A stretch of DNA of 59,924 nucleotides, the filler included, from Platydemus manokwari (Eukaryota): NCBI GenBank assembly GCA_037951405.1. It is 5 parts of 5 records of this genome, joined end to end, with 100 filler letters (N's around TTAATTAATTAA, not from the genome) between each part and the next. Parts side by side here need not be neighbours in the genome. Positions count along the whole stretch, not along the records: positions 46,358 to 59,924 come from JBBMOY011689178.1; 4 more parts are not named here. One strand, written 5' to 3'. Made by a program: the position numbers and the translations under genes. Below are positions 56,423 through 56,883 of the stretch, piece by piece (within the stretch, counting starts at the first letter, position 1; each line of letters starts with the position of its first letter). The notes under the pieces were generated by a model. That model saw only the letters and a list, made by a program, of their open reading frames with translations, was not told where the DNA came from and did no database searches.

Positions 56423-56883
56423 TCATTGTCTTTCTCCACGGATTCTTCGAGCCAATTGCATATCTTTTGGCATTATTGTAACACGTTTAGCATGGAGAGC
56501 ACATAGATTTGTATCTTCCATCAAACCCACCAAATATGCTTCACTGGCTTCCTATTATAAATAATTATTGATTGATTTATCGATATTATATTATTCATTA
56601 CTTGTAAAGCACCGATTGTTGCAGATTGAAATCTCAAATCAGCACAAAAACTCAAAGCAATTTCTTTAACCAATCTCTGAAAAGGTAATTTTCTGATCAA
56701 TAATTCTGTGGATTTCTGATATTTTCGTATTTCTCTCAAAGCAACTGTTCCGGGTTTGAATCGATGAACCTTTTTCACGCCGCCAACTGTCGGAGCAGCT
56801 TTTCGTGCAGCTTTGGCTGAAATTTGTTTTCTTGGAGCAATGCCTCCAGTGGATTTTCGAGCAGTTTGTTTAGTTCTGGCCAT
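56423..56883 (-). CDS. Divergent histone H3 variant (H3.3-derived), 136 aa; exons 56883-56602, 56551-56423
   Basis: [94 protein letters not shown]|[42 protein letters not shown]. Canonical H3 length, with one 50-bp phase-0 GT-AG intron after Q93. Confidence 0.96.

Follow-up and report, generated by a model that had tools for sequence, protein, structure and literature searches.

A divergent histone H3 gene, derived from H3.3, that has lost K14, S28, and K79

Results

The window analyzed here is a stretch of DNA of 59,924 nucleotides (filler included) from the Platydemus manokwari assembly GCA_037951405.1, in which five parts are joined end to end; all positions are counted along this stretch. 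The portion of the genome examined was the 13.5-kb piece at its end (record JBBMOY011689178.1). The minus strand of this piece carries a two-exon gene, read from the assembly consensus, that encodes a histone H3 of 136 amino acids including Met (Table 1). Both exons matched the Pfam Histone family (PF00125; E of 5.8e-20 for exon 1 and 1.8e-16 for exon 2), with scores (72.2 and 60.9 bits) above the Pfam gathering cut-off (26.4), as expected of a core histone H3. Splicing restores the canonical Q93/E94 junction, and the alignment of the variant to H3.3 contains no indel (structure-database comparison; residues 1 to 94 gap-free for exon 1). The first-pass annotation of a full-length, correctly spliced gene free of indels therefore agrees with both the gene model and the H3.3 alignment. 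No histone 3' stem-loop (Rfam RF00032) was detected at the gene at E values up to 1. The GC content at third codon positions (GC3) of the coding sequence was 0.23, equal to that of the intergenic background, and thus gives no hint of selection on codon usage.

Table 1. Positions of the variant H3 gene and neighboring features in the window
Feature	Position	Strand	Description
Start codon	56883-56881	-	ATG
Exon 1	56602..56883	-	94 codons, Met plus residues 1-93; from translation and Pfam
Exon 1 content	56602..56883	-	N-terminal tail, alpha-N, alpha-1, L1, start of alpha-2
Spliceosomal intron	56552..56601	-	50 nt, GTAATG...ATAG, phase 0, between Q93 and E94
Exon 2	56423..56551	-	42 codons (residues 94-135) plus TGA stop
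Codon 14	56839..56841	-	ATT, Ile for Lys
Codon 28	56797..56799	-	GCT, Ala for Ser
Codon 79	56644..56646	-	TGT, Cys for Lys
Codons 72-80	56641..56667	-	alpha-1/L1 surface patch: R72K, Q76L, D77S, K79C, T80A
Codon 104	56519..56521	-	ATG, Met for Phe, H3-H4 interface
Polyadenylation-type signal	56344..56349	-	AATAAA; gap of 73 nt from stop codon to signal
Repeat copy	56251..56398	.	148 nt, holds the AATAAA; 3' flank or UTR of the variant gene
Twin repeat copy	55201-55346	direct repeat	89% identical; no H3 coding sequence beside it
Ankyrin-repeat gene, two exons	48746-48931 and 49315-49551	-	Pfam Ank
Upstream kilobase	56858-57857		low GC

The sole other recognizable coding sequence in the piece is an ankyrin-repeat gene, whose two exons lie ∼380 nt apart (Pfam Ank, E down to 2.5e-11); a Pfam search of 10 other open frames of the piece returned ankyrin repeats only. 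The kilobase upstream of the variant gene has a GC content of 0.158, compared to 0.25 to 0.30 elsewhere in the piece. The twin of the repeat in the 3' flank lies ∼1 kb further downstream, and the pair may represent a dispersed short element or what is left of a partial duplication. An origin from a giant virus was considered, given the AT-rich DNA, the ankyrin repeats, and the histone; it was rejected because the variant gene has a spliceosomal intron placed as in H3.3, introns split the ankyrin gene, and genes are sparse.

Because the variant keeps I89 and G90, has its intron at the H3.3 position, lacks a stem-loop, and is followed by AATAAA, we conclude from its sequence that it is a derivative of H3.3 that arose by duplication at the DNA level. 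Its top matches among solved structures are H3.3. The chaperone motif at residues 87 to 90 reads ATIG in the variant and AAIG in H3.3: A87, I89, and G90 are retained and A88T is the sole change, so that the motif predicted to be recognized by H3.3 chaperones, for which G90 is decisive, is present. Serine 31, the other hallmark residue of H3.3, is replaced by T31, which can still be phosphorylated. The gene structure is also of the H3.3 type, i.e., intron bearing, with a polyadenylated-type 3' end in place of a stem-loop. Database open reading frames for H3.3 (dozens of them) enter an intron immediately past ...AAIGALQ, and two genuine H3.3 genes, each on an AT-rich contig from a eukaryote (L015 and L018), share the layout of the variant gene: a 94-codon exon 1, an intron, and an exon 2 starting with EASEAY. 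H3.3 and the variant thus have in common a length of 136 amino acids, I89/G90, a phase-0 intron past Q93, the lack of a stem-loop, and a poly(A) signal; they differ in that the variant has lost K14, S28, Y41, R42, and K79 and carries A88T within the motif as well as T31. A processed pseudogene (retrocopy) was ruled out, since the parental H3.3 intron is present and no poly(A) tract lies downstream.

The variant is collinear with H3.3 (∼85% identity) and differs from it by 21 replacements. Residues 1 to 13 are unchanged, and the changes in the tail all lie beyond them (K14I, L20I, A21S, T22A, S28A, S31T, and T32V). Nine replacements fall between residues 38 and 80 (P38V, Y41F, R42K, R53K, R72K, Q76L, D77S, K79C, and T80A), and five fall between residues 88 and 135 (A88T, F104M, I112L, I124M, and A135Q). 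They affect the tail, the DNA entry/exit region (41, 42, and 53), the alpha-1/L1 patch (72, 76, 77, 79, and 80), and the core (88, 104, 112, and 124); P38V adjoins K36/K37. Each of the replacements in the helices of the fold (n = 5; R53K, A88T, F104M, I112L, and I124M) has a BLOSUM62 score of at least 0, and the histone-fold core is conserved. K14I, S28A, and K79C had been called in the first-pass annotation, as had the retention of K4, K9, S10, K18, K23, K27, K36, K37, and K56; all of these calls were correct. The three changes it described are, however, an incomplete account of the protein, which carries 18 more. K115 and K122 are kept, as is S10; all three are altered in the primate variant H3.Y.

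We searched for relatives of the variant in 5.8 billion proteins with the exons as separate queries, using exon 1 as a whole, scored on residues 54 to 94, or scored on residues 8 to 48 (match P0119, labeled Homo sapiens, was left out). No H3 with I14 or C79 was found among the best 120 matches per search. When JGI metagenomes were scanned with a degenerate DNA motif for TGGIAPRKQ, 14 matches were obtained, of which none was an H3; viral contigs gave 0 matches. The motif FCADLRFQ matched 10 viral contigs, of which L026 alone gave a weak tblastn hit; its open reading frame does not encode a histone. Neither orthologues nor paralogues with I14, A28, and C79 were thus detected among the best protein matches or in the JGI metagenome and viral searches. 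The 120-amino-acid read-through open reading frame has no exact record in the protein collections, and a full-text search found the peptide strings KSTGGIAPR and [15 protein letters not shown] in no paper. Since the variant's own protein is absent from the same collections, its lineage may be unsampled in them.

We then asked whether the replacements resemble neutral decay. To become a Lys codon, the ATT at codon 14 would need at least 2 base changes and the TGT at codon 79 would need 3, in agreement with the earlier statement that both lie at least two bases away. Together, the 21 replacements imply a minimum of 30 base changes, with 2 or 3 needed in each of 8 codons. In neutral simulations, an ancestor coding for H3.3 (assumed to be of the animal type) was mutated until it differed at 21 residues, with 6,000 runs for each mutation bias; stop codons, rather than indels or splice-site changes, were the disabling events scored. 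The number of simulated codons needing at least 2 changes averaged 0.93 with a maximum of 6 to 7 (observed, 8; P(≥8) = 0), and a total of 30 minimal changes was reached in no run. Only 8% (AT biased) or 18% (unbiased) of runs were free of stops, and the replacements scored on average −0.43 in BLOSUM62 in simulation versus +0.29 observed (P about 0.025). Based on the absence of stops and indels, the multihit codons, and the conservative replacements, a young, neutrally decaying pseudogene was rejected, upholding the first-pass view on this point. Repeated changes at a few sites, with the residues of 115 codons kept, are the expected signature of long, strong, and site-specific constraint. Against the unrelated H3.3 genes L015 and L018, dS was saturated or undefined, so that dN/dS carries no information on the variant's own branch.

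A copy that was silenced recently would show this same substitution pattern. The gene could be a paralogue that is intact but silent or recently inactivated, for instance by promoter decay, and that once encoded a functional H3 variant. In keeping with such a history, no RNA run containing 31-mers of the variant gene was found, no orthologue appeared among the best matches, GC3 is at the background level, and a repeat sits in the 3' flank. However, the organism has hardly any runs, so that their silence says little; nothing is damaged at the start codon, at either splice site, in the frame, or at the poly(A) signal; and multihit codons combined with conservative replacements need a long period of constraint. 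We therefore regard silencing as unlikely, though it is the alternative that survives best.

To place the replacements among other H3 proteins, we compared the variant to 104 collinear H3 sequences, the best matches from the 5.8 billion proteins. In this set K14, A21, P38, R72, Q76, D77, and K79 do not vary (104/104). Position 28 is S in 101 sequences and A in 3, and thus the claim that three normally invariant sites were replaced stands in this set for K14 and K79 but is overstated for S28, which is not strictly invariant. The bearers of A28 include an H3 of Onygenales fungi, called histone H3.1 by its source, which also has I20, A22, and K42. T31 occurs in 2/104. Among other database matches, the H3 of Carpediemonas and further sequences carry V38, F41, K42, and K53. 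Position 79 varies in divergent H3s (Q79 in Carpediemonas and R79 in P0413), and K14 is kept in the named divergent H3s that have an alignable tail, among the matches listed in full (Carpediemonas, Mitosporidium, and Steinernema hermaphroditum).

These comparisons bear on a second alternative, in which the organism evolves fast, its histones are all rather divergent, and the variant is simply the H3.3 orthologue of its lineage, perhaps the sole one. The gene structure is the same as that of genuine H3.3 genes, and several of its residues recur in normal H3 proteins elsewhere (K42 in 41/104), as would be expected of such an orthologue. On the other side stand the replacement of six residues that are invariant in all 104 best matches (K14, A21, R72, Q76, D77, and K79) and the retention of K14 even in the named divergent H3s with an alignable tail, although position 79 does vary among them. 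On balance this reading appears improbable, and somewhat more so than silencing.

Four divergent H3 proteins from metagenome and Logan data share residues with the variant. P0273 is an uninterrupted H3-like protein of 149 amino acids (L030:180-629, a 903-bp contig of JGI sample 3300030542) with K42, K72, L76, S77, A80, M104, and M124; unlike the variant, it has Q79, and its N-terminal tail is wholly replaced (no [10 protein letters not shown]). P0283 shares L76 and S77 but has H79, and P0376 shares A80 and M104 but has R79. P0415 shares L76, A80, and L112 and has lost K14, as T14 rather than I14. The four proteins are 71 to 79% identical to the variant, below the identity of canonical H3.3, and their composition and gene structure differ from those of the variant. 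In a tree of 22 H3 proteins, which was star-like, the variant had no supported grouping and a terminal branch of 0.21. We conclude that these proteins are analogues and not orthologues of the variant, and the same H3 positions seem, from the sequences compared, to have been remodeled repeatedly in independent H3 offshoots. P0283 and P0376 form a supported pair (bootstrap 99/95), both with a tail insertion after residue 5, and represent a further family, known from metagenomes, of H3 variants that lack K79. P0415 is another natural H3 without K14; its gene is intronless (L032:1114-1524) and is arranged head to head with the gene for a divergent H2A (L032:281-673; Logan SRR11790208).

Exact 31-mers were also sought in sequencing runs. 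Run X1, possibly derived from the source sample itself, contains 92 to 93% of the sampled 31-mers and lacks about 3/40 gene words. Run X2, which bears another organism label, contains about 11/40 gene 31-mers and no flank words, and run X3 contains about 2. The presence of gene but not flank words in X2 might have indicated conservation or RNA; this reading was rejected, since one short contig inside the gene suffices to produce the pattern. That the gene is an artefact of assembly or consensus, or foreign DNA (a contaminant or a virus-derived histone), is very improbable: the gene is known from the assembly consensus and a few of its words are missing from X1, but codons 14 and 79 each need more than one change, 21 coordinated in-frame replacements are unlike errors, exact gene 31-mers occur in two differently labeled samples, the composition and short intron fit the flanks, and no viral match was found.

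Discussion

Taken together, these data favor a functional, lineage-specific replacement H3 that arose by duplication of H3.3, resists several modifications, and is held under purifying selection for nucleosome assembly. We consider this reading probable, well ahead of an intact but silent paralogue. The surfaces that are modified or that dock other proteins would have diverged while assembly of the nucleosome stayed under purifying selection. Because I89/G90 are kept and the gene structure is of the H3.3 type, deposition is probably independent of replication, as for H3.3.

Nucleosomes containing the variant are predicted to lack acetylation or ubiquitylation of K14, phosphorylation of S28 or Y41, methylation of R42, and DOT1-type methylation of K79. 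With C79 flanked by L76, S77, and A80, the protein does not present a DOT1/DOT1L substrate. The earlier proposal that such nucleosomes would be refractory to K14ac, S28ph, and K79me therefore holds, provided that the protein is made and deposited. Effects on the remaining sites are also plausible. In Drosophila, H3S28A is described as reducing PRC2 methylation of K27 (PMC5811592, citing Yung et al. 2015). By analogy, PRC2 probably acts less well on K27 next to A28, and K27 of the variant, though present, is possibly undermethylated. Likewise, V38 may alter methylation of K36, and K42, K53, and M104 may, by analogy to other variants, yield a more open or less stable particle.

The first-pass annotation also raised, as speculation, a dominant effect of I14. 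We know of no K14-directed SET enzyme in the host. The enzyme for which poisoning by K-to-M and K-to-I changes has been documented is PRC2, a SET-domain protein, at K27 (PMC3885631), and not one acting on K14; a dominant effect of I14 has analogy as its sole basis and is unsupported. The suggested deployment in germline or stem-cell chromatin is unsupported as well, with no RNA run found that contains the gene.

The variant falls into a known class, namely, lineage-specific offshoots of H3.3 that have shed modification sites (H3.5, H3.Y, and plant H3.10). Plant H3.15 is another such offshoot. What is new is the combination of losses, which was not seen in the collections searched. Like the variant, human H3.5 is of H3.3 origin, has lost K79, and has replaced F104. 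H3.5 (H3F3C) is expressed in testis and derives from human H3.3 (PMC4714512); it has N78 (equivalent to K79) and L103 (equivalent to F104), and F104L makes its nucleosome unstable (PMC4714512). The corresponding residues of the variant are C79 and M104. In contrast to the variant, H3.5 retains K14 and S28, and only 5 substitutions and the deletion of one Lys separate it from H3.3; H3.5 and the variant are not related by descent.

Primate H3.Y also lacks K14 (Q14) and has M124. It resembles the variant in its derivation from H3.3, the loss of K79, and the presence of K42 and K53, but it is of independent origin, carries other replacement residues, and has S10, K115, and K122 changed. Residues 77 to 80 of H3.Y are A77, I78, S79, and P80 (PMC5291245, PMC5449609). 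The H3.Y nucleosome has flexible DNA ends, with K42 and K53 near them, and R42K reduces binding of H1 (PMC5291245). HIRA deposits H3.Y, whereas DAXX does not (PMC5449609).

A functional model for a replacement H3 that resists modification is provided by the Arabidopsis sperm histone H3.10 (HTR10), an H3.3-like protein that is cell type specific and described as immune to K27 methylation (PMC8566409), although it belongs to the plant lineage and differs from the variant in its residues. One could imagine that the variant is a nonplant counterpart of H3.10 that, delivered by the H3.3 route in one cell type, forms a more open chromatin (through K42, K53, and M104) that simultaneously resists acetylation of K14, the phospho-switch at S28, efficient methylation of K27 and K36, and methylation of K79 and that resets or insulates chromatin states. 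We regard this proposal as an unlikely one. In its extreme form, I14 would in addition trap a K14-directed enzyme in trans.

Offshoots of H3.3 that lack given modification sites are natural experiments on the roles of those sites. The variant drops K14, S28, Y41, R42, and the whole K79 patch while keeping K4, K9, K27, K36, and the H3.3 deposition motif, and it adds to the evidence that positions 76 to 80 and 104 are places where new H3 variants diverge recurrently. If expressed, it would be a ready-made separation-of-function allele for the biology of K14, S28, and K79 in its host.
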